Positions 2,026 through 48,420 of a stretch of DNA of 64,000 bases are shown here, in pieces (the first letter of the stretch is position 1; each line of letters starts with the position of its first letter). Source of the DNA: Oculina patagonica (lineage: Eukaryota). The translations under genes and the position numbers were made by a program. The stretch is taken from NCBI RefSeq assembly GCF_052425735.1, contig NC_135758.1, positions 32,860,001 through 32,924,000 on the forward strand, given 5' to 3'. The notes below the pieces were generated by a model that saw nothing but the letters and a program-made list of their open reading frames with translations, was not told where the DNA came from and searched no databases.

Positions 2026-2541
2026 AGCAACGTCAGCATTTTGTTTGTTATTATGATGTTACGCAACATTCAACCTCGTTCCCAGGGCTTTTCCCTTGGT
2101 GATTTGGAACGGGCTGGGAACGAGGTTGCGCAACATTAGGTTTATTTGAGAACACATTAACTTGACTTATTGCCAAAGCCCTAAGTGGGCATAGGGCCGG
2201 AGAAGGAGGGGGGGGGGGGAACACATTAACGTGGGAGCCTAAACTGTGGAATTTGATCTACATATATTGATCTAAAAAACAGTGTCTCAGATTTTTCTTT
2301 TCTTCCTCCATTAATTTTTTATGAATTTTTAATCCTAAAGAAGCCTTAAAAGCGCCATTTTAAAGTTTAAAAATTTATAAAAAATTAATGGAGGAAGAAA
2401 AGAAAAATCTCAGACACCGTTTTTTAGACCAATATATGTAGATCAAATTCCTCATAAAATTTTGGGCTCTCACGTAATTGTTTTCTCAAATGAACCTAAA
2501 GTTGCGCAACATCATAATTGCAAACAAAATGCTGACGTTGC
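2026..2541. mobile_element. Palindromic (foldback) element with a nested mini-MITE
   Basis: gcaacgtcagcattttgtttg (2026) is inverted against caaacaaaatgctgacgttgc (2521), with inner arms symmetric about ~2350. Nested caacctcgttcccagg...ctgggaacgaggttg (2071-2128) is flanked by a 9-bp duplication, cgcaacatt. Confidence 0.65.
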
Positions 2542-5500
2542 GAACAGTAAAGCTAGAAAACAGGATAAGCGCGCGCGGGAATACGTTACATTGATCTCTT
2601 TTCCGTATTATGTAACGTACCGTTAACTAAAAGCCAAATCAGGGTAAATCTCTCTAAAACCACGTTTCAAACTGTGGTACCACAGCTGGCCCTACGTGGC
2701 TGAGCTAACTGTTTACAATCTATACCGATGATACGTTTACAAAAAGTTTAAAACTGGCAAAAGTCTAATGACCTAAGTTAGGAAAGTTCGTTGGATGTGT
2801 TTAACAATTGATGATGAGATTACTTTACTAAAAATTGCCGTAAACTATATAAGCTTTCGCAGTTATGTTTTAAACATTGTTATTAGGATTTAATTTCGGT
2901 AAATTAAATCTCTTAAAAACAAAAATAATTTACTCACCATCGGAAAAAGCTGAGCGCTTGGCACGGAACAAACTCGCTTGGTCGTTTTCATTTGTTAGCT
3001 CGCGACGGTTTGTTGTTCACGCGTACTTTAAATTTGAACGCTCGCATCATGCGTGCGCGCGCAATCTGGGCACCAAAAAGAGTGGGTATTGGCACAGCGC
3101 GCGGCTAAAAATAAGTGAGGGAAAAGTTTTGACGTCTCAGGACAATACCTTGACATTAAAATCCAAGAACTGCACGAAATTCGGCTATGTTACTTGACGA
3201 CTGGCTATTGGGTTTTACTTGGTAGTAACAGGTTGTCTTTACAAAAAAAAAAAAAAAAAAAAAAAAACTGTTTCTTGTTGTTATTATCTAGTTTTAAACT
3301 TTTTGTAAACGTATCATCGGTACAGATTGTAAACAGTTAGCTCAGCCACGTAGGGCCAGCTGTGGTACCACAGTTTGAAACGTGGTTTTAGAGAGATTTA
3401 CCCTGATTTGGCTTTTAGTTAACGGTACGTTACATAATACGGAAAAGAGATCAATGTAACGTATTCCCGCGCGCGCTTATCCTGTTTTCTAGCTTTACTG
3501 TTCGCAAATTAATTATCTCTCTAAAGGGTCTGTCACTGTGCCCCTGACGAGAATGGCAGACTTTCTGAGCTTTCATGACAATCTACTCCGATCAAAGAAA
3601 ACTTACTAGTGAGCTCACTATTATAAATTCCTTAATTAAACTAAAATAGTAATTTATCTAAGCGATAAATTTAAATAAAGACAACAGATCACTACTAAGT
3701 AAACCACCATAGCCAGTCATTGAGTCTGTTACTTACACAAACATAACTATAATATTAGGACTTTTCTTTACCATCTAGTCTGTTAACTCTCTAGTCAGTC
3801 AGTCTTATGGATGGTTTTCTGCACTTTCGACCTTCGTCTGCTCGGTCAGTTTGTTCAGACCTTTCAGGTGCTTATGCACATGTTTGGCTGTTCACTCGGC
3901 AGTTCATTCGAATCGTTGTTTCTGCAGTCTTCATATCCGTTACTTACATGAACAGTAAAAGCCGAAATATTAAAACCTATAGAGTTCCGAAACTTTTTGG
4001 TTTTAATATCATAAATGGCATGCCACAGCGTTGGAACTATTCCTTCGCTTAGGAAAATCAAAATAACAATTTGCTTTAACCATATGCCGGATCTCGATCC
4101 CACCATATGGCGGACCATGTCCAACTCAAGATCCAGTCCTCCGTGGGTCAGTTGTGCTAGACCTCTTTTCGTTTCGAGATAGGCGAAAACGTCTATAAAA
4201 CGACCTTGTTAGTACCCACAAAGAAATGGTTTGTCTATGGCACTCAATTTCTTTGTAAAGACGGTTGGATGTATCCGGGAAGGAGAGCTCATGGCCCGTA
4301 AACTTTCAGTGGATTTTGCCATTTTGTTAGGTATAAAATAATTCAGTTTTAAACCGAAGATAATATAACAAGAAACAGTTTTTTTTTTTTTTTTTTGTAA
4401 AGACAACCTGTTACTACCAAGTAAAACCCAATAGCCAGTCGTCAAGTAACATAGCCGAATTTCGTGCAGTTCTTGGATTTTAATGTCAAGGTATTGTCCT
4501 GAGACGTCAAAACTTTTCCCTCACTTATTTTTAGCCGCGCGCTGTGCCAATACCCACTCTTTTTGGTGCCCAGATTGCGCGCGCACGCATGATGCGAGCG
4601 TTCAAATTTAAAGTACGCGTGTACAACAAACCGTCGCGAGCTAACAAATGAAAACGACCAAGCGAGTTTGTTCCGTGCCAAGCGCTCAGCTTTTTCCGAT
4701 GGTGAGTAAATTATTTTTGTTTTTAAGAGATTTAATTTACCGAAATTAAATCCTAATAACAATGTTTAAAACATAACTGCGAAAGCTTATATAGTTTACG
4801 GCAATTTTTAGTAAAGTAATCTCATCATCAATTGTTAAACACATCCAACGAACTTTCCTAACTTAGGTCATTAGACTTTTGCCAGTTTTAAACTTTTTGT
4901 AAACGTATCATCGGTATAGATTGTAAACAGTTAGCTCAGCCACGTAGGGCCAGCTGTGGTACCACAGTTTGAAACGTGGTTTTAGAGAGATTTACCCTGA
5001 TTTGGCTTTTAGTTAACGGTACGTTACATAATACGGAAAAGAGATCAATGTAACGTATTCCCGCGCGCGCTTATCCTGTTTTCTAGCTTTACTGTTCGCA
5101 AATTAATTATCTCTCTAAAGGGTCTGTCACTGTGCCCCTGACGAGAATGGCAGACTTTCTGAGCTTTCATGACAATCTACTCCGATCAAAGAAAACTTAC
5201 TAGTGAGCTCACTATTATAAATTCCTTAATTAAACTAAAATAGTAATTTATCTAAGCGATAAATTTAAATAAAGACAACAGATCACTACTAAGTAAACCA
5301 CCATAGCCAGTCATTGAGTCTGTTACTTACACAAACATAACTATAACATTAGGACTTTTCTTTACCATCTAGTCTGTAAACTCTCTAGTCAGTCAGTCTT
5401 ATGGATGGTTTTCTGCACTTTCGACCTTCGTCTGCTCGGTCAGTTTGTTCAGACCTTTCAGGTGCTTATGCACATGTTTGGCTGTTCACTCGGCAGTTCA

Positions 5501-5663
5501 TTCGAATCGTTGTTTCTGCAGTCTTCATATCCGTTACTTACATGAACAGTAAAAGCCGAAATATTAAAACCTATAGAGTTCCGAAACTTTTTGGTTTTAA
5601 TATCATAAATGGCATGCCACAGCGTTGGAACTATTCCTTCGCTTAGGAAAATCAAAATAACAA
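2538..5663. repeat. Unclassified repeat family, array 1: inverted partial copy (2538-~3289), forward partial copy (3290-4069), full 1594-bp unit (4070-5663)
   Basis: Identical ORFs at 2877-3197(+) and 4442-4762(-), and at 3807-4052 and 5401-5646 (offset 1594). Confidence 0.9.
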
Positions 5664-5917
5664 AAATCAATTATTATTAAGAAAAGAGAAAATTTGCATA
5701 TCTGAAATCCGCTCGCGCACAAGACAGCTCAGCATACGACAACAGTGCTGTCGTGTCTATCGACTACGCATAAAGAAAAACAACACAGAAAACGAACGAA
5801 ACCACGTGAATAATATTCTTTTATTTATTTATTTAATTTTTTTTACTGTTGTGGTCTCCCTGTGTGGATGTTTGGGTGTGTGACCGTAGTATACAAAGTT
5901 ACAGTTGGTGCGATTGA

Positions 5918-6673
5918 TTGAAAAAATAACATCAAAACACAGTCAGCTAAACAAAACGAGTGAAGTCGGTGTTGCGCGAGAACAACTATCCACCATCTTT
6001 TATTAACAAGTGTGAGAGATCACTGTCAAAACCACCAGCAGATTTACCAACTAATGGCTTCGTGGTACTCCCCTATGTTCAAGGCATTTCCGAAAAGATT
6101 GGCCGCATTTTGAGACAACAAGAGATCAAAGTCGCCTACAAACCGCTAAAAACTGTAAACAGTTTGTTTCCGCGCCCAAAGGCTCAAAATGATGTTGACC
6201 GCCCAAGATCTGGCGTAGTTTACAAAATCAATTGCACCAACTGTAACTTTGTATACTACGGTCAAACGGAGCGACCATTAAAGACCCGGATTGCGGAACA
6301 CAAACGAGCAGTGGCCATATTCGACCATGACTCAAAGATCTCCTGTCATGTACATGAAAATAATCACCACATGGATTTCAATGCCGTCAATGTAGTTGGA
6401 CATGAGCGAAATTACCACAAGCGACTCTTTTTGGAAGCCTGGTTGTCCATAAAGGATACGCACTCTGGGAACGACCATGCTGTCATCCCAGAGGTTTACA
6501 AGTCCTTGTCACGCGCATGAGTTTCGCGCCACGTTTTCTTTTGTTTCAAACTTTTACACGTTAACGTGCTGCTACTTTTTTAAATCGCGTGTGAAAGCTT
6601 TGATTTTTTAACTGATGAAGGCTTAAGCAATAGCCGAAACGTCTTGAAAAAATAACATCAAAACACAGTCAGC
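5918..6673 (+). mobile_element. Penelope-like element fragment: RT C-terminal/linker region plus GIY-YIG endonuclease, with 30-bp terminal direct repeats
   Basis: ORF 5960-6520 has LPYVQGISEKI and GVVYKINCTNCNFVYYGQT...RIAEH...LEAW. ttgaaaaaataacatcaaaacacagtcagc occurs at 5918-5947 and 6644-6673. Confidence 0.9.
6603..6653 (+). ncRNA. Minimal type I hammerhead ribozyme of the Penelope-like element
   Basis: Stem I attttttaa, CTGATGA (6612-6618), stem II GGCT/AGCC, GAAA (6636-6639), C GTC^ (predicted cleavage after 6643), stem I' ttgaaaaaat. Confidence 0.85.
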
Positions 6674-8054: not shown

Positions 8055-9546
8055 ATGAGATTTTGTTTTATACTTGCCATTTTATTCGCCTTAACTATAT
8101 GGCATGTCATTGCAGGTATTACTTTTTTTAAAAAAAAAATTGCGCACTGAAAAGTTTTCAGCCTGTTGGCATGAAAATAGCGTTTTAACTTTTATTTTTT
8201 TTAAGTTGCATTAGTTCTAATATCCTCGCTATACAAGTTTATACTTTTCGCCGTTTTACTGTTTGATTGCATTTCACTAACTTTTCTTGTTTTATATATA
8301 GCCGAGAACTGTTTAAGCTGCCGTAGTCCCAGAGAGCCTCCGAGTCCTTCATTCCAAGTGAATTTACTGAACAAGAAATGGTCTGGGAGCGACAGCAACA
8401 TTGCTTGGGTTGATAATTTGACTGGCGGAAAACCTGGAACTTGCGCTTCCCAAGGTATCTTTGATCACTCGATCTTTCAGGTTGTTTATTGATGAGGAAA
8501 GTGTGGGGTAAATAAAATACACTGGATAGGAGATCGTTGACTCGAGGTTATAAAAGCAAGGGGCCTGAGAAAAGCACCTATTTTTTAAACGGGCCGTTTT
8601 TTCCCAGAAACTTGACTTTCATGCAAAACACATAGAAGTGCAAAACACATAGAAGTATCACTGTGTATTGAACACAAATATGTTTTTACCGACACAAAAC
8701 TGTTGTACAAAAAAATTTGATGAGTGTATCTGATTGTCATTCACAGGTAAGCTTCGCATAAGGTTTGATCCAAGATGCGGCCCCAAACGAACCGCCAGGA
8801 TCGACTTGTGGTTTGCTCGTCAAGTTACAGGATTCTCGTTTGACATCGGTGACTCGCCCACAGTTAATGGATTCGGTAAGAAAAGAGGATGGTTTTGGTT
8901 GCATGCGAACATATAATTACTTAATCATGCGTAACCGAGCAATCAACACCAAATACTAGTATCTCTGTCAACGCCTCATTTTCCCTTCTTTTTCTCCAAA
9001 TTTTTTGTTTTTTGACACGATGGCTTTCCTAATTGTCTTACGGATTCTTTTTTATGAACGTGTTTCAAAATTATGTTTTTTTTTTCACTCGTCGGCTATT
9101 TACCTGTCCAACTTATTTTTTAACTTTGTATCATTTTTTCTCGTTTTCAATTTCTTCTAGGTGGAGATTCAGGAACAACCCCAAACACCGCTGAGGTGCA
9201 TGGAAAAGAGAGACACCTGTTAATATATTCCAACGTACTTACTGGTTACCAGGACTACACAACAAACGGCCACCTGACGGTTGAAGAAAAATGGAAAGCC
9301 CTTAGTGATCACGTGACCTATTATATCAGTCACGAGCGAGTGGAGGTCACCAACTACCGCGGTTACCAAGCTGTGTACGACAGCAGATATCTCTTTGTTC
9401 TGGATGGTGGGCCGATCGGAAAATCACCCTTTTCCTATTCTTATGCAAAGGTCGAGACCGACATCTGGCTGAGCATGAACCGTGTGATCAGCGGTTCATA
9501 CCGGTCTGGGACTGGTCTTTGTAAGGTGGCCATCACCTGGGTTTAG
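8055..9546 (+). CDS. Uncharacterised secreted protein, 242 aa, 4 exons (8055-8115, 8302-8454, 8747-8875, 9161-9546)
   Basis: GT-AG phase-1 introns join into an open 729-nt frame; hydrophobic N-terminal signal MRFCFILAILFALTIWHVIA; paralogous exon at 1-194; AATAAA near 9650. Confidence 0.8.
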
Positions 9547-10178
9547 CAGTCAAGAACTGAGTCTTAGGAGAGGGAGGTCGGAGACACTGTTTCTACCTCA
9601 ACTTTTCCTTGACTGCAGTCAATTGTAACAATGCTGTATTACACTGAACAATAAACGCATTGTACTAAACATCAATGTTTCTTATTTGACTTCTCTGACT
9701 AATACAGTATTTTTTATGTCCTAACATTCCAATTTGAATAATCAGAAACTTGCACAAAAAACAACACAGGATTATGATCCCAGCAGTCTGTCGTGGTTAC
9801 TTGAAGACAAAAGTAAAAACAAAATCGTTTAAAAGTTTAAAGAAAGATCAAATTTGTAACCCATCTTTGACTCCTATTTTTGTATTTGGGAGCTTGAACT
9901 TACAATTACCTTACCACCCTTCTTCCACTATATGCCCCCCACCCATCCACCCAATGGAGGTTACCCTGAACTTCAGCAGTCTTCTCTGGTCACTTTCTCC
10001 TGGGAAAGACCTCTGATGTCTTTCTTGGGAGTAAGAGATGAGAGAACACGGTTGAAACTCAGGCTTCAAACTGGTGGGAACCTCCTTCTCTTTAAAGAAA
10101 ATAGCGTGGCAAACGAACAATACAACTGGTTCTAAAGCAGCATTTTTTTTTATTACATTTGGAAAGTGTTTTTACACA

Positions 10179-20886: not shown

Positions 20887-23800
20887 GTCGTTTGATTATT
20901 TCAAGCGAAGGAATAGTCCCAACGCTGTGGGATGCCATTAATGATATTAAAACCAAAAAGTTTCGGAACTCAGCAGGTTTTAATATTTCGGCTTTTAGTG
21001 TTTATGTAAGTTACGGATGAAAAACTGCAACAACGATCAGAATGAACCGCCGAGTGAACAGCCCAACATGTGCATAAGCGCACGAATGGTCTGAACAAAC
21101 AGACTGAGCAGACGAAGGTCGAAAGTGCAGAAAACCATCCATAAGACTGATTGACTAGAGAGTTTACTGACTTGATGGTAAAAAAAATCCTAATAGTTAT
21201 GTTTGTGTAAGAAACAGACGCAATGACTGGCTATGGTGGTTTACTTAGTAGTGATCTGCTGTCCTTATTTAATTTTATCGCTTAGGCAAACTACCATTTT
21301 TATTTTAATCAAGGAATTCATAATAGTGAGCTCACTAAAAGTTTTTCTTGGATCGGAGTAGATTGTCATGAAAGCTCAGAAAGTCTGTCATTCTCGTCAG
21401 GGGCACAGTGACAGACCCGTTAGAGAGATTATTATTTCGCGAAGATTACGCTAGAAAACAGGATAAGCGCGCGCGGGAAGACGTTACATCGATCTTTCTA
21501 TCCGTATTGTAACGTACCGTTAAACTAAAAGCCAAATCAGGGTAAATCTCTCTAAACCACGTTTCAAACTGTGGTACCACAGCTGGCCCTACGTGGCTGA
21601 GCTGACTGTTATCAATCTATACCGATGAAACGTTTACAAAATGTTAAAATAAGGCAAAAATGAATGACATAAGTTTTAAAGTTCGTTGAATGTGTTTCGA
21701 ATTGATGATGAGATTATATCACTTAAAAGTGCCGCAAACTATTAAAATAAGCTTTCGCAGCTGTCTTTAACCATTGTTGTTTGGATTAAAGTGGTAAATT
21801 GTTTTTGATTATTTGAAGCGTGGTTTAGAGAGATTTACCCTGATTTGGCTTTTAGTTTATCGATACGTTACAATACGGATTAAAGATCAATGTAACGTCT
21901 TCCCGCACGCGCTTATCCCCTTTTTTTTTTCTAGCTTACTCTTAGCGAAATAATTATCTCTCTAAGGGGTCTGTCACTGTGCCCCTGACGAGAATGGCAG
22001 ACTTTTTGAGCTTTCATGACAATCTACTCCGATCCAGGAAAACTTATTAGTGAGCTCACTATTATAAATTCTTCAATTTAACTAACAATGGTAATTTACT
22101 TAAGCGATAAAATTAAATAAGAACAACAGATCACTACTAAGTAAACCACCATAGCCACTCATTGCGTCGGTTACTTACACAAACATAACTATTAGGACTT
22201 TTTTCTTTACCATCTATAGCTAGTCAGTAAACCCTCTAGTCAGTCAGTCTTATGGATGGTTTTCTGCACTTTCAACCTTCGTCTGCTCAGTCTGTTTGTT
22301 CAGGCCTTTCAGGTGCTTATGCACATGTCAGGCTGTTCACTCAGCGGTTCATTCGGATCGTTGTTTTTGCAGTCTTCATCCGTTACTTACATAAACAGTA
22401 AAAGCCGAAATATTAAAACCTACTGAGTTACGAAACTTTTTGGTTTTAATATCACAAATGGCATCCCACAGCGTTGGAACTATTCCTTCGCTTCAAATAA
22501 TCAAAAACAATTTTTGGTTTTCCTTTAATCCTAACAACAATGTTCAAAACATAGCTGCGAAAGCTTATTTAGTTTACGGCACTCATTAGTAATATAATCT
22601 CATCATTTATTGAAAACACATTCAACGAATTTTTAAAACTTAGGTCATAACATTTTGCCTTATTTTAACATTTTGTTAACGTTTCATCGGTATAGATTGA
22701 AAACAGTTAGCTCAGCCACGTAGGGCCAGCTGTGGTACCACAGTTTGAAACGTGGTTTAGAGAGATTTACCCTGATTTGGCTTTTAGTTATCGATACGTT
22801 ACAATACGGATAAAAGATCAATGTAACGTCTTCCCGCGCGCGCTTATCCCTTTTTTTCTAGCTTACTCTTCGCGAAATAATTATCTCTCTAAGGGGTCTG
22901 TCACTGTGCCCCTGACGAGAATGGCAGACTTTCTGAGCTTTCATGACAATCTACTCCGATCCAGGAAAACTTATTAGTGAGCTCACTATTATAAATTCTT
23001 CAATTTAACTAACAATGGTAATTTACCTAAACGATAAAATTAAATAAGAACAACAGATCACTACTAAGTAAACCACCATAGCCACTCATTGCGTCGGTTA
23101 CTTACACAAACATAACTATTAGGACTTTTTTCTCTACCATCTATAGCTAGTCAGTAAACCCTCTAGTCAGTCAGTCTTATGGATGGTTTTCTGCACTTTC
23201 AACCTTCGTCTGCTCAGTCTGTTTGTTCAGGCCTTTCAGGTGCTTATGCACATGTCAGGCTGTTCACTCAGCGGTTCATTCGGATCGTTGTTTTTGCAGT
23301 CTTCATCCGTTACTTACATAAACAGTAAAAGCCGAAATATTAAAACCTACTGAGTTACGAAACTTTTTGGTTTTAATATCACAAATGGCATCCCACAGCG
23401 TTGGAACTATTCCTTCGCTTCAAATAATCAAAAACAATTTTAATCCTAACAACAATGTTCAAAACATAGCTGCGAAAGCTTATTTAGTTTACGGCACTCA
23501 TTAGTAATATAATCTCATCATTTATTGAAAACACATTCAACGAATTTTTAAAACTTAGGTCATAACATTTTGCCTTATTTTAACATTTTGTTAACGTTTC
23601 ATCGGTATAGATTGAAAACAGTTAGTTCAGCCACGTAGGGCCAGCTGTGGTACCACAGTTTGAAACGTGGTTTAGAGAGATTTACCCTGATTTGGCTTTT
23701 AGTTATCGATACGTTACAATACGGATAAAAGATCAATGTAACGTCTTCCCGCGCGCGCTTACCCCTTTTTTTTTTTTCTAGCTTACTCTTCGCGAAATAA

Positions 23801-24361
23801 TTATCTCTCTAAGGGGTCTGTCACTGTGCCCCTGACGAGAATGGCAGACTTTCTGAGCTTTCATGGCAATCTACTCCGATCCCGGGAAAACTTATTAGTG
23901 AGCTCACTATTATAAATTCTTCAATTTAACTAACAATGGTAATTTACCTAAGCGATAAAATTAAATAGGGACAACAGATCACTACTTAGTAAACCACCAT
24001 AGCCACTCATTGCGTCGGTTACTTACACAAAGTAACATTAAACTATTAGGACTCTTTTCTTTACCATCTAGACGTCAGTAAACCCTCTAGTCAGTCAGTA
24101 TTATGGATGGTTTTCTGCACTTTCGACCTTCGTCTGCTCAGTCTGTTTGTTCAGACCTTTCACGTGCTTATGCACATGTCAGGCTGTTCACTCGGCAGTT
24201 CATTCGGATCGTTGTTTTTGCAGTCTTCATCCGTTACTTACATAAACAGTAAAAGCCGAAATATTAAAACCTACTGAGTTCCGAAACTTTTTGGTTTTAA
24301 TATCACAAATGGCATCCCACAGCGTTGGAACTATTCCTTCGCTTCAAATAATCAAAAACAA
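20887..24361. mobile_element. Unclassified repeat family, array 2: inverted ~0.93-kb unit (20887-~21819), forward partial unit (~21820-22510), two forward ~925-bp units (~22511-23437, ~23438-24361)
   Basis: Same sequence family as 2538-5663; both ends carry the same terminus (...ctattccttcgctt[c/g]aaataatcaaa) in inverted orientation; flanked by the 123-bp direct repeat. Confidence 0.88.
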
Positions 24362-46567: not shown

Positions 46568-48420
46568 GGCGAAGGTTAAGAATCCGATCCAAACAACGCG
46601 TCGGTCAACACGTCGGTCAACGTGTCGGCCGACGCGTCGGCCGACTGTCGGTCGACTGTCGGTCGACAGTCGACCGACACACGGCCGACAGTCGGCCGAC
46701 GCGTCGGCAAGTATTTTTCAGTACATGAAAACCGAGGATAAATTGTGCGTCGGTGGTGCGTCGGCGGTGCGTTGGCGGTGCGTCGGCGACTTTTTCTCTT
46801 GAAATAAAAGCTTACAATGATTAAGTTTGGTGTTGTCTTTCTCATTATTTAAAATTTCGAAGTCATTTGATTAGTTTTAGCTGCAATAAGTCTGGAAATG
46901 ATCGCGTTTTTTTTTTGTCGACGCCATTTTGTTTTGACATCGACCTAGTCCCCACGCTACTTTAACATGCAGCCTGACTGGGCACTAGACAGGTAAGTCG
47001 ACTTAATACTTGGGTATTATTTAGTTTCGGGATTGATAGGGATTGTATTAACTCTTTATTGGTCATTTTCTTTTGTATTTGTGGTGGCTCCTAAAGGAGC
47101 CGTTGGTTTTGAATAAATATTCTTTTATTGTAGCGGAAACTGCTCAGCAATGTCTTCCAGCAGCTGTTCAAATGCTCTGTCTCCTGCGAAGTTTCTGAAC
47201 CAGACGAACTCATCTAAGTAACTTGGTAAGTGTTCGTAAAGGGTACCAGACATGGACTTCAACTTCTTTTTCACCAAAGCCCACAAGCCTTTGATTGTGT
47301 TGGTGTGTGCACCACTGTCTGGATCGACGAAGTTCTCTGAGTGATTCACCGACAGGTGAATGTATCCGAGCTGGTTCAGTGGGATGTACGGGGAAAATTG
47401 ATCAGAGTAGATGACAGTTCCGGGAAGAATGTGCGTTGTAATTAGACGGTGAACAAGTGTTGCTCTTGTACGATCTGGAACACGGAACAGTAGCGCCTTT
47501 TTAGATCCACGCTCCACGGCTCCAAACACCCACGGACCTTCCGATACTCTCCCTCTCTGGTACTTTCTCTTGGCCCCAAACTTTGACTCGTCTATCTCCA
47601 CGGTCTTTCCCACGCCTCCGATCTTAATTCCAGCATTCAGAATCTTGTTAGAACAGATTGTTCTCAGCTCACTCAGCGCACGGATCACGGTAGGCTTTGA
47701 AAGCCCAGTCAGCCTCGAGATTTGACTTCCAGACAACTTCGTAGACCACAGGAACATCAGATGAAGCCACGTACTCAAGGGGATATTGGAACCTTCGAAG
47801 TATGAGCCTGACCTTATAGACAGCCAGGTTCGACAGCGGCTATTTACACACCGCCACATGTAGCCATCATTTACGCGCGTGGTCTCAGTTAATTCCATAT
47901 CAGAATTACATCGAGAACACTGACGTTGACTCGCTAAGAGTCGATTATTCACTAAAAAGTTAAAAACACTCTGGAAACTTCCTAATAAAACAAGAAGATC
48001 CCGAAACTCCATTTTCAACTTTTGCAGAGCCTAGTTACGAGTTTAAGTTTTAAAGATGGCGTCGGTATTACGTTGTCGTCTTTCTGTGTTTCCCACTCCT
48101 TTCAAAGACTGAAAAGTAAGTAAAAAAATAATAGTCTAACAAACAAGCAACATAACAAAGAATAGTGTTCGTAGCCTTCGTATCTGTAGTGTGTTTGTCG
48201 GCGTTCGTAGCCTTTGCGTCGGCATTGTTTTGGTCGGCGTTCATAGTCTTTGTCTTTCTCTTTGTCGGTGATGTGTCGGCCGACGCGTCGGTAATGAGTC
48301 GGCCGACGCGTCGGTAATGTGTCGGCCGACGCGTCGGTAGTGTGTTGGTGGTGGGTCGGCCGACACGTTGGCCGACGCGTTGACCGACGCGTTGTTTGGA
48401 TCGGATTCTTAACCTTTTCC
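46568..48420 (-). mobile_element. Full-length Merlin (IS1016/ISXO2-like) DNA transposon with 8-bp TSD
   Basis: aaatctag at 46560-46567 and 48421-48428; GG termini; TIR (a)aggttaagaatccgatccaaacaacgcgtcggtcaac; subterminal gtcggccgac repeats. Confidence 0.93.
47125..48018 (-). CDS. Merlin/ISXO2 transposase, 297 aa
   Basis: Zinc-ribbon CSRC...WRC...C; VEIDESKF; IYSD; VNHSENFVDP; HTNTIKGLW; YLDEF. Confidence 0.92.
   Translation of the reverse strand: MKMEFRDLLVLLGSFQSVFNFLVNNRLLASQRQCSRCNSDMELTETTRVNDGYMWRCVNSRCRTWLSIRSGSYFEGSNIPLSTWLHLMFLWSTKLSGSQISRLTGLSKPTVIRALSELRTICSNKILNAGIKIGGVGKTVEIDESKFGAKRKYQRGRVSEGPWVFGAVERGSKKALLFRVPDRTRATLVHRLITTHILPGTVIYSDQFSPYIPLNQLGYIHLSVNHSENFVDPDSGAHTNTIKGLWALVKKKLKSMSGTLYEHLPSYLDEFVWFRNFAGDRAFEQLLEDIAEQFPLQ

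Follow-up and report, generated by a model that had tools for sequence, protein, structure and literature searches.

Results

The window analysed here is a stretch of 64,000 nucleotides from Oculina patagonica (contig NC_135758.1, positions 32,860,001 to 32,924,000) that is free of any N. At positions 2538-5663 it holds three copies of one repeat unit: a reverse-complement copy of unit 276-1032 is followed by unit 815-1594 and then by a full unit of 1594 bp. The last of these (4070-5663) served as the reference for all unit coordinates given below, and alignment to it bore out the arrangement read in the initial annotation, namely an inverted copy followed by forward tandem copies of a 1594-bp unit. 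The three copies are 99.6-100% identical to each other, and the repeats at this locus are far beyond chance.

The inverted copy (2538-3289, minus strand; reverse complement of unit ~281-1032) is incomplete at the 5' as well as at the 3' end, and its alignment to the unit runs on to position 3300 (unit 276). Over 723 nt (2538-3260 versus 4379-5101) it is 100% complementary to the full unit, the remainder differing by an A28 versus a T19 run and by two small changes. The A28 run (3243-3270, minus strand) is the reverse complement of the unit's internal T19 run (4379-4397) and represents a slip in length, not a poly(A) tail. At the head-to-head junction (3280-3300), the inverted 5' end (unit ~281) meets the forward 5' end (unit ~814) in an imperfect microhomology of ~10 nt, where the two alignments overlap (3290-3300) and both cover a ...TTTAAAC... 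stretch. The forward partial copy (3290-4069, plus strand; unit 815-1594, 3 mismatches in 780 positions) corresponds to a pseudo-LTR and reaches as far as the family's fixed terminus, from where a seamless tail-to-head junction at 4069/4070 leads into the full-length, non-coding unit (4070-5663, plus strand), hereafter termed the passenger unit. A snap-back origin of the inverted copy was considered and rejected, since this copy contains unit 276-814, which is missing from the neighbouring partial, and is therefore not a snap-back copy of that neighbour.

Both flanks of the locus consist of other repeats. The foldback element to which the left end had been assigned as a neighbour is indeed found at 2030-2537, outside the element itself, and is a member of an abundant MITE/foldback family with at least 985 first-look matches. 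Both ends of the other MITE copies match query 1-51, and these copies continue for 11 bp past the counterpart of position 2537; at the junction, the final 11 bp of the right terminal inverted repeat are missing. The left end of the locus is atypical in that it corresponds to unit 1032 and not to the family terminus, lies 11 bp inside the MITE and shows no visible target-site duplication (TSD); that the inverted copy lacks the terminus and ends in this position calls for the assumption of a deletion or of some irregular event. The absence of a TSD around the entire locus, as noted before, was confirmed, the longest word common to the two flanks being 10 nt long and of low complexity. On the right, a 198-bp repeat in the same orientation (5667-5864, plus strand) represents another abundant family; this family has a fixed end of its own, here at 5864, and nearly all of its at least 161 first-look matches end at query 201. 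It is also found directly upstream of passenger copies at C8:30.44 Mb, and may be part of the same concatemer or stem from a separate event.

The 1594-bp unit contains only ORFs of at most 106 aa without any Pfam family, and antisense frames across the unit junction are broken. No tRNA-like module was identified by ARAGORN in window 1-30000, Rfam gathering and E-value scans of the unit and of both helper elements described below brought up no hammerhead or other ribozyme, and a core-motif scan that detected the hammerhead core at ~6612 as a positive control gave none either. A perfect palindrome of 14 nt (4953-4966, plus strand; unit 884-897), found also in the forward partial (3359-3372) and in the inverted copy, is a hot spot of 5' truncation among the copies of the genome: independent junctions lie at unit 877, 878, 880, 882, 882, 895 and 898, and 7 of 67 fragments start within unit 870-900.

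Close to the 3' end, a conserved module (5555-5647, plus strand; the same module at 3961-4053) is common to both helper families and to other families, with a mean column identity of 74% in an alignment of 13 families (A1). It is predicted to fold into two hairpins (5555-5613 and 5617-5647) with an MFE of -28.2 kcal/mol (z = -4.35; 0 of 200 shuffles as good); covariation for these hairpins is weak, with a compensatory change in 1 of 14 pairs, and does not prove them. The module is followed by an A/C-rich, predicted single-stranded terminus ending in ...ACAA (5648-5663, plus strand), which is the fixed 3' end of the family and the site at which reverse transcription would start. When a 120-nt tail query was used, all 40 scored plus-strand matches ended at 117-120, and the 41st row was a minus-strand partial belonging to a tail-to-tail pair. 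Poly(A) tails are absent from the passenger family, whose tails end in ...ACAA without a telomeric stretch.

A passenger search of the assembly yielded 107 matches and at least 313 first-look candidates, dispersed across the genome, and end points were counted on 67 non-redundant fragments. The resulting distribution is non-random at the 3' side, with 53 of the 67 fragments ending at unit 1587-1594, and variable at the 5' side; first-look matches fell on the 3' tail 233 times versus 64 times on the head. In the second array of the window (array 2, 20891-24361), both outer boundaries fall on the homologous terminus (at unit 1587 and at unit 1588), in agreement with the common end proposed earlier. 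Its units are truncated at unit 674-677 and represent a subfamily that is 89% identical to the 1594-bp unit. The ~670 bp described as extra sequence at 2538-5663 are in fact absent from array 2, but they are not an addition, as they constitute the 5' part of the full-length element and occur in more than 20 other copies. As to the four array ends, three of which were said to stop at one internal site, three do share a terminus, which is not internal but the element's 3' end and the putative start of reverse transcription; the remaining end, at 2538, corresponds to unit 1032.

The inverted-plus-tandem layout recurs in array 2, at C13:28.36 Mb and C1:16.03 Mb, and at two further loci, L010 and L051. 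It is seen at many unlinked loci, where the truncation points differ and the outer terminus is constant. At L051, the two inverted arms derive from different RNAs, one carrying a passenger tail and the other a helper tail. In three cases a composite array as a whole is enclosed by a TSD (15, 29 and 123 bp), and no TSD was found at four solo truncated copies. These data bear on an origin at the DNA level, by local tandem or inverted duplication, satellite-like expansion or fold-back repair without reverse transcription at the site. Such an origin would fit the missing TSD at 2538-5663, the missing terminus of the inverted copy and the higher similarity of the three copies among themselves than to any other, the closest copy elsewhere in the assembly reaching at most 97% identity to the units of the locus among the 107 matches. 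The source copy is therefore unseen, and local gene conversion could have contributed to the identity within the locus. However, we regard a DNA-level origin as highly improbable, because the layout is repeated at many unlinked loci with a constant outer terminus, single TSDs enclose whole arrays, the inverted copy holds unit 276-814 that the adjoining forward partial lacks, and the forward array stops exactly at the family terminus. The shared ends, the excess of tails over heads and the recurring layout support the initial view that programmed copying and not random segmental duplication is at work.

Among 22 units starting at position 1, 21 are directly preceded by the tail of another unit. 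The upstream partials start anywhere from unit 124 to 1547 and are 98.5-100% identical to the adjoining full unit in 13 of 13 such pairs. Tail-to-head junctions are seamless throughout (18/18), which means that the template spans them, either as a multimer or as a circle, whereas tail-to-internal junctions are ragged, with extra bases or lost tail bases, and point to template jumps. Arrays also contain internally truncated units as well as mixed subfamilies and pieces of the helper elements. Both mechanisms suggested initially can be assessed on this basis: template jumping is supported by the ragged junctions and by the arrays mixing passenger and helper, and from the proposal of a circular template the contiguous tail and head can be retained on account of the seamless junctions and near-identical pairs, the circle itself being supported by no ribozyme.

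If a circular RNA of 1594 nt were reverse-transcribed by a rolling-circle route comparable to that of retrozymes, with the fixed end as the start site on the circle, this would account for the seamless junctions, for the near identity of the upstream partials with their full neighbours and for the very variable length of these partials, given that multimeric transcripts alone would only let the partials become shorter with each generation. Coral retrozymes are moreover known to form circRNAs (PMC7229834). Internally truncated units and mixtures of subfamilies with helper sequences are, in contrast, impossible from one circle, and the ribozyme scans of the unit and both helpers were negative despite the positive control. 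We judge this route to be unlikely, and favour a Penelope-like mechanism copying a template in which tail and head adjoin.

With respect to priming, (TTAGGG)3.5 is joined to a reverse-complemented tail at L010, suggesting that synthesis at the tail was primed there by a DNA 3' end. This is the only tail-telomere junction in the genome, and telomeric repeats are not a feature of the family's tails.

Two families of candidate helper elements, 6.3 and 5.6 kb in length, have the passenger head and the 3' module in common with the unit. The first matches unit 1-117 at 86% and unit 1460-1573 at 78% identity, and the head of the second is 93% identical to unit 11-259. The helper copies are likewise 5'-truncated with a fixed tail, and they are not confined to chromosome ends, being located for example at C13:1.88 of 38.3 Mb and C7:27.07 of 33.3 Mb, and in the interior of two further sequences (C11:5.26 of 24.2 Mb, C4:9.27 of 64.4 Mb). 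Each helper encodes, in a single fused ORF, a reverse transcriptase (RT) of 849-854 aa, and this gene is oriented antisense relative to the copied polarity of the elements. Other ORFs above 95 aa were not found in the 6272-bp helper unit. As judged by codon comparison, the helper RTs are under purifying selection (dN/dS between the two ~0.09).

The helper ORF gave no direct hit in Pfam, including RVT_1, or in a PDB sequence search. It resembles proteins combining RVT_1 and GIY-YIG domains (BLASTP versus P0024, E = 9e-18, residues 358-763), and the motifs LPKVHK..GRPI, YADDG and S-HPRHVF can be aligned; on the basis of this similarity and these motifs, the RT is likely of the Penelope-like element (PLE) type. 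The nearest Atlas clusters, to be taken as a lead only, are rotifer and fungal RT clusters with HTH_animal, DUF8422 and RVT_1. A GIY-YIG domain was not detected in the 849-aa ORF by Pfam at E values up to 1. The passenger subfamily at 2538-5663 may be mobilised by the RT of one of these helpers, whose tails are 74-78% identical to that of the subfamily and in neither case fully so.

The passenger could alternatively be a SINE-like partner of a LINE (non-LTR) RT recognising the 3' module, with the PLE-type helper as a bystander. In favour of this, the ~110-nt module occurs in many families, some of which (L045, L048) end in long A runs as LINE-dependent SINEs do. But the passenger family itself carries no poly(A) tail, no LINE with this tail was found, and the sole RT-bearing elements with both head and tail possess a PLE-type RT. 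PLEs are furthermore marked by pseudo-LTRs, by inverted pairs with their tails facing out and by arrays in which helper and passenger are chimeric (PMC8557442), and we regard a LINE-driven origin as highly improbable.

Discussion

We conclude, with a probability of roughly 75%, that the locus at 2538-5663 is one young insertion, or the outcome of very few events, of a 1594-bp non-autonomous retroelement that integrates in a Penelope-like fashion. PLE insertions are characterised by a pseudo-LTR, an inverted upstream copy and 5' truncation (PMC8557442), and by its sequence the passenger family, with a full-length unit of 1594 bp, follows this architecture. The PLE-type RT would be supplied in trans by the 5.6-6.3-kb helper, which shares the first ~260 nt and the ~110-nt 3' module of the passenger. 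It might bind the 3' module of an RNA intermediate and, primed by a free 3'-OH of the genomic DNA, begin the cDNA at the A/C-rich ...ACAA. On a template with contiguous tail and head (a circle or a multimeric transcript produced by read-through), the RT would copy one full unit, cross the junction and stop at unit 815. A second, opposite cDNA, arising either by priming at the other DNA end or through a strand switch, would then meet the first head to head at a short microhomology and thus give rise to the inverted copy. The PAc system, in which reverse transcription starts internally in an AC-rich element and both DNA strands are extended (PMC11167929), is consistent with such a course, and the fixed end of the passenger agrees with an RT that starts internally, at an A/C-rich element within a transcript of several copies.

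With the canonical PLEs (Penelope/Poseidon, Neptune, Nematis, Hydra, Naiad/Chlamys), the passenger shares the partial upstream tandem copy (pseudo-LTR), the constant 3' end combined with frequent loss of 5' sequence, and the adjacent inverted 5'-truncated copy, which at 2538-3289 is also 3'-truncated. PLEs also have TSDs of variable length; in the passenger family, TSDs were found at three arrays, and none at the locus at 2538-5663 or at the four solo copies. The relationship of the helper RT to proteins combining RT and GIY-YIG is a further likeness. Differences concern the non-coding nature of the passenger unit and the orientation of the helper RT gene, antisense to the copied polarity. EN+ PLE clades carry GIY-YIG at the N- or C-terminus, while the likely helper is devoid of it, and the hammerhead that PLEs except Naiad and most Chlamys have in the pseudo-LTR is found in neither passenger nor helpers. 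PLEs may also carry an optional 'tail' extension of 30-40 bp at one end; at a few passenger junctions, extensions into the next head of only 4-6 nt were seen, and none of 30-40 bp. Among non-autonomous PLE derivatives, MRC1 and other Chlamys elements (PMC8557442) differ from the passenger in that the latter has an animal host and another RT lineage, has the 5' ~260 nt in common with its helper in addition, and would depend on a helper without endonuclease.

Metazoan non-LTR retrozymes, which occur in stony corals and for which copying from circular RNA has been proposed, resemble the passenger as non-coding tandem units linked to PLEs (PMC7229834; bioRxiv 10.64898/2026.07.22.740005). Their units, however, measure 150-450 nt and each contain a type I hammerhead, as opposed to 1594 nt without a hammerhead, and they are expressed as circular RNA, while the passenger is known here from genomic sequence.

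Athena/Coprina elements and Terminons (Gladyshev and Arkhipova 2007, via PMC8557442 and PMC6431247) have an RT without endonuclease like the helper, form head-to-tail arrays like the passenger and use exposed DNA 3' ends, for which the (TTAGGG)n-primed synthesis at one insertion, L010, is a counterpart; the rotifer and fungal clusters nearest to the helper RT serve as a lead in the same direction. According to these accounts, Athena/Coprina are restricted to chromosome ends and carry reverse-complement telomeric repeats next to a 3' hammerhead, which is not true of the passenger and helper copies and their tails, and the helper differs from both groups by its single fused antisense ORF.

Twin priming and endonuclease-independent insertion have reportedly been described for L1 elements. 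They resemble the passenger insertions in inverted 5'-truncated segments joined at microhomology and in events at pre-existing breaks, with absent or atypical TSDs. The passenger differs from L1 in its RT class, the absence of poly(A) and concatemers of several units.

Whether the family represents a coral PLE-type lineage of its own is, in our opinion, an evenly balanced question. Such a lineage would possess an RT without endonuclease, reside within chromosomes, keep its RT gene opposite to the copied RNA, mobilise hammerhead-less 1.6-kb passengers and integrate at pre-existing DNA 3' ends, including telomerase-extended ones. Given the orientation of the RT gene, mRNA and transposition template would be different transcripts, and integration at pre-existing 3' ends would explain the long, variable TSDs as well as the insertions devoid of them. 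Should the helper assignment be correct, a PLE without endonuclease is able to spread within chromosomes, and a retroelement is able to carry its RT gene in antisense to the template from which it is copied; no description of either was found in the literature searched.

The integration of PLEs is less well understood than any other major route of retrotransposition, and the passenger family provides a natural record of it, with a fixed putative RT start, junction types that separate read-through from jumps, arms derived from two RNAs and one insertion apparently primed by telomeric repeats. For genome annotation, arrays of this kind would have to be treated as single retro-insertions and not as satellites or segmental duplications. 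In the same window, a neighbouring PLE carries a hammerhead core at ~6612.

Results and discussion

Anatomy of the locus

The locus at window 2538-5663 represents the PLE (Penelope-like element) way of integrating, in a variant that combines a non-coding, non-autonomous passenger with a likely helper. BLAST of the 1594-bp passenger unit against the window, which is metazoan DNA with a GC content of ~38%, resolved it into an inverted arm (2538-3300, minus strand, reverse complement of unit 276-1032), a forward partial copy (3290-4069, plus strand, unit 815-1594) and the full unit used as reference copy (4070-5663, plus strand, 1594 bp). A 723-nt part of the arm is 100% complementary to window 4379-5101, and the full and partial copies show 3 differences in 780 positions. 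The head-to-head junction sits within an imperfect microhomology of ~10 nt, and at 4069/4070 tail and head join seamlessly. This layout agrees with the initial annotation. The "extra 670 bp" reported there, compared with a second locus of the family (array 2, 20891-24361), are a real stretch but need to be reinterpreted as 5' sequence that belongs to the full-length element, array 2 units being 5'-truncated (at unit 665-677 and 899). Array 2 belongs to a subfamily 87-89% identical to the 4070-5663 unit, and its outer ends lie at unit 1587/1588 on both sides.

No ORF with a known family, tRNA or Rfam match was found in the unit, nor was a hammerhead core detected in it by our own motif scan, which does recover the core of a neighbouring PLE at ~window 6612.

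No TSD is visible at the window locus. On the left, the border lies within a MITE, in the right terminal repeat and 11 bp in from its end, and the inverted arm ends at unit 1032 instead of the tail. To explain this stop, one has to assume that sequence was deleted later, that synthesis was primed internally at a 2-nt match, or that a strand switch was followed by end joining. At the right border, AAA is followed by a 198-bp repeat that belongs to another family and has the same orientation. The MITE or foldback element (2030-2537), whose right terminal repeat lacks 11 bp at the array start, is a member of a highly abundant family, with at least 985 first-look matches, and contains a nested, perfect hairpin (2268-2431) that yields spurious sub-threshold matches to plant miRNA models. 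For the 198-bp repeat (5667-5864), which has a fixed end at 5864, first-look matches of 95-100% identity number at least 161. Outside this locus it is often arranged in tail-out inverted pairs, abutting or ~770 bp apart, and passenger copies follow it directly at C8:30.44 Mb.

A fixed 3' end and variable starts

Searching the unit against the 529-Mb assembly gave at least 107 matches, with 40 of at least 313 first-look candidates scored; after overlap removal among 30 fetched loci, 67 fragments were retained. The genome-wide distribution of ends, the check proposed by the initial annotation, proved non-random: 53 of the 67 fragments end at unit 1587-1594, 23 start at position 11 or below and the remaining starts are scattered. 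When the last 120 nt were used as query (233 first-look candidates), the ...ACAA terminus was reached by all 40 scored plus-strand matches, the 41st row being a minus-strand partial that is part of a tail-to-tail pair; the first 301 nt yielded only 64 first-look candidates. Among the matches listed, no unit elsewhere in the assembly is more than 97% identical to the locus units, and the source copy is therefore unseen.

Between unit 875 and 899, fragment starts form a cluster that surrounds a perfect 14-nt palindrome (window 4953-4966). This fits an obstacle to a polymerase coming from the 3' side, although transcription may instead start there. At nucleotide resolution, the junctions of this hot spot are distinct and thus stem from independent events.

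The last ~110 nt of the unit are conserved in 13 families, both helpers included; the predicted fold (z = -4.35) has two hairpins, after which an A/C-rich end is left single-stranded. The stem of hairpin 1 is kept while its loop varies in sequence and length; formal covariation of the hairpins is weak. At L045:142-300 and L048:250-400, both fetched loci, other families that carry this module terminate in long A runs and not in ...ACAA, which means either that several kinds of retroelement use the module or that its end is plastic.

Arrays, junctions and target sites

The same grammar recurs elsewhere, as partial-then-full tandems and as head-to-head pairs or bidirectional arrays with tails as outer ends. 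Another unit's tail lies directly upstream in 21 of the 22 units starting at position 1, and no array beginning with position 1 against the flank was found at the fetched passenger loci. In 13/13 pairs the immediately upstream partial copy is 98.5-100% identical to its full neighbour; the remaining members of those arrays are 82-96% identical. All 18 extractable tail-to-head junctions are seamless (...ACAA directly followed by TTTGC...), whereas tail-to-internal junctions carry 1-6 extra bases or have lost 1-4 tail bases. We read these two classes, from sequence, as two processes. In the first, a junction already present in the template, whether this is a circle or a multimeric transcript, would be copied across. 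The second would consist of true template jumps onto a new 3' module. Such jumps would explain arrays that mix subfamilies, or passenger with helper, and chimeric arrays of joined helper and passenger pieces do occur. In the tail-out pair at locus L051, the arms stem from different RNAs, one with a passenger and one with a helper tail, by which snap-back or DNA-level inversion is ruled out for this pair.

TSDs surround the whole composite array in three cases: array 2 (123 bp), C8:24.46 Mb (15 bp, with a 57-bp filler) and a head-to-head passenger pair at L010 (29 bp; L010:1440-1530 and L010:3300-3360, G000:C13:9272570-9274490). None was found at four solo truncated copies. At L010, the left TSD copy (ending GGGG) and the reverse-complemented tail are separated by ~3.5 TTAGGG repeats, and this telomeric-repeat stretch runs directly into cDNA starting at the element's last base. 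The junction fixes the polarity of the copied strand and points to priming from a free DNA 3' end; it looks like a broken end that was extended by telomerase and then primed reverse transcription. It is the sole telomeric-repeat/tail junction in the genome. A tail-to-tail pair of passenger copies, meeting at a single base, lies at G000:C13:7517879-7518092; this arrangement is not predicted by the two-ended priming model.

Likely helpers

The first 117 nt of the unit were also found beside an 849-aa ORF. This family, helper-1, has a period of 6272 bp and has head, tail and palindrome piece in common with the passenger. Its copies are 99-100% alike and share the passenger's truncation polarity, with head-side starts at 1, 6, 136, 250, 332, 1774, 2687 and others and the tail always present; the ORF lies on the strand opposite to the copied polarity. 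One array-end helper unit (L034:4589, G000:C13:1882131) stops at unit position 529 instead of the tail and breaks the fixed-end rule. Helper-2 (C6:28.40 Mb; period 5570 bp, 854-aa ORF) has the same tail-head-antisense ORF layout, a head 93% identical to unit 11-259 and a protein 56% identical to that of helper-1. A comparison of the two ORFs gave pN = 0.29 and pS = 0.75, hence a dN/dS of ~0.09 with dS saturated; therefore, the gene was kept working in its antisense orientation.

The helper protein has no direct Pfam or PDB match. Its distant relatives carry RVT_1 and GIY-YIG; residues 358-763 align with one of them (E = 9e-18), including the usual RT motifs, and its Atlas neighbours, as a lead only, are rotifer and fungal RT clusters. 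Neither a GIY-YIG domain nor a second ORF above 95 aa was found in the helper, and no Rfam match was obtained at either helper locus. These RT-bearing families are the likely partner of the passenger; we infer the acting RT, since helper tails are only 74-78% identical to the tail of the 4070-5663 subfamily.

Comparison with known elements

PLE insertions are recognised in the literature by pseudo-LTRs, by neighbouring inverted copies that are 5'-truncated and by frequent 5' truncation; non-autonomous derivatives that resemble their partners at the 3' end have also been described (PMC8557442). The RT of the anole PLE PAc initiates internally, at an AC-rich stem-loop within a multi-copy transcript, and extends the DNA on both strands (PMC11167929). 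Three features described here fit this scheme, namely the constant ...ACAA terminus, the seamless junctions and the inverted arm. In published accounts, endonuclease-free PLEs are bound to telomeres and bear a hammerhead plus telomeric complements 3'-terminally (PMC8557442, PMC6431247), all of which are absent here. Coral retrozymes are hammerhead units of 220-240 nt that make circles (PMC7229834), in contrast to a passenger of 1594 nt in which no ribozyme was found. We assign the locus to the PLE way of integrating because of the shared insertion marks, as a variant in both passenger and likely helper.

A small canonical PLE is present at window 5878-6673, with a GIY-YIG C-terminal ORF (5960-6520), a 30-nt direct repeat (5918-5947 and 6644-6673) and its own inverted fragment (5878-5919, reverse complement of 6226-6267). 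Its hammerhead-like core, CTGATGA...GAAAC at ~6612-6640, went unreported by Rfam at thresholds as loose as E = 10; a lack of Rfam matches therefore counts for little as evidence against minimal hammerheads of PLEs. Elsewhere in the window, a histone 3' UTR stem-loop (Rfam RF00032, 40 bits; 47061-47106, minus strand) marks a replication-dependent histone gene, and a 197-nt direct repeat of 95% identity occurs at 1-197 and 9353-9549, 9.35 kb apart.
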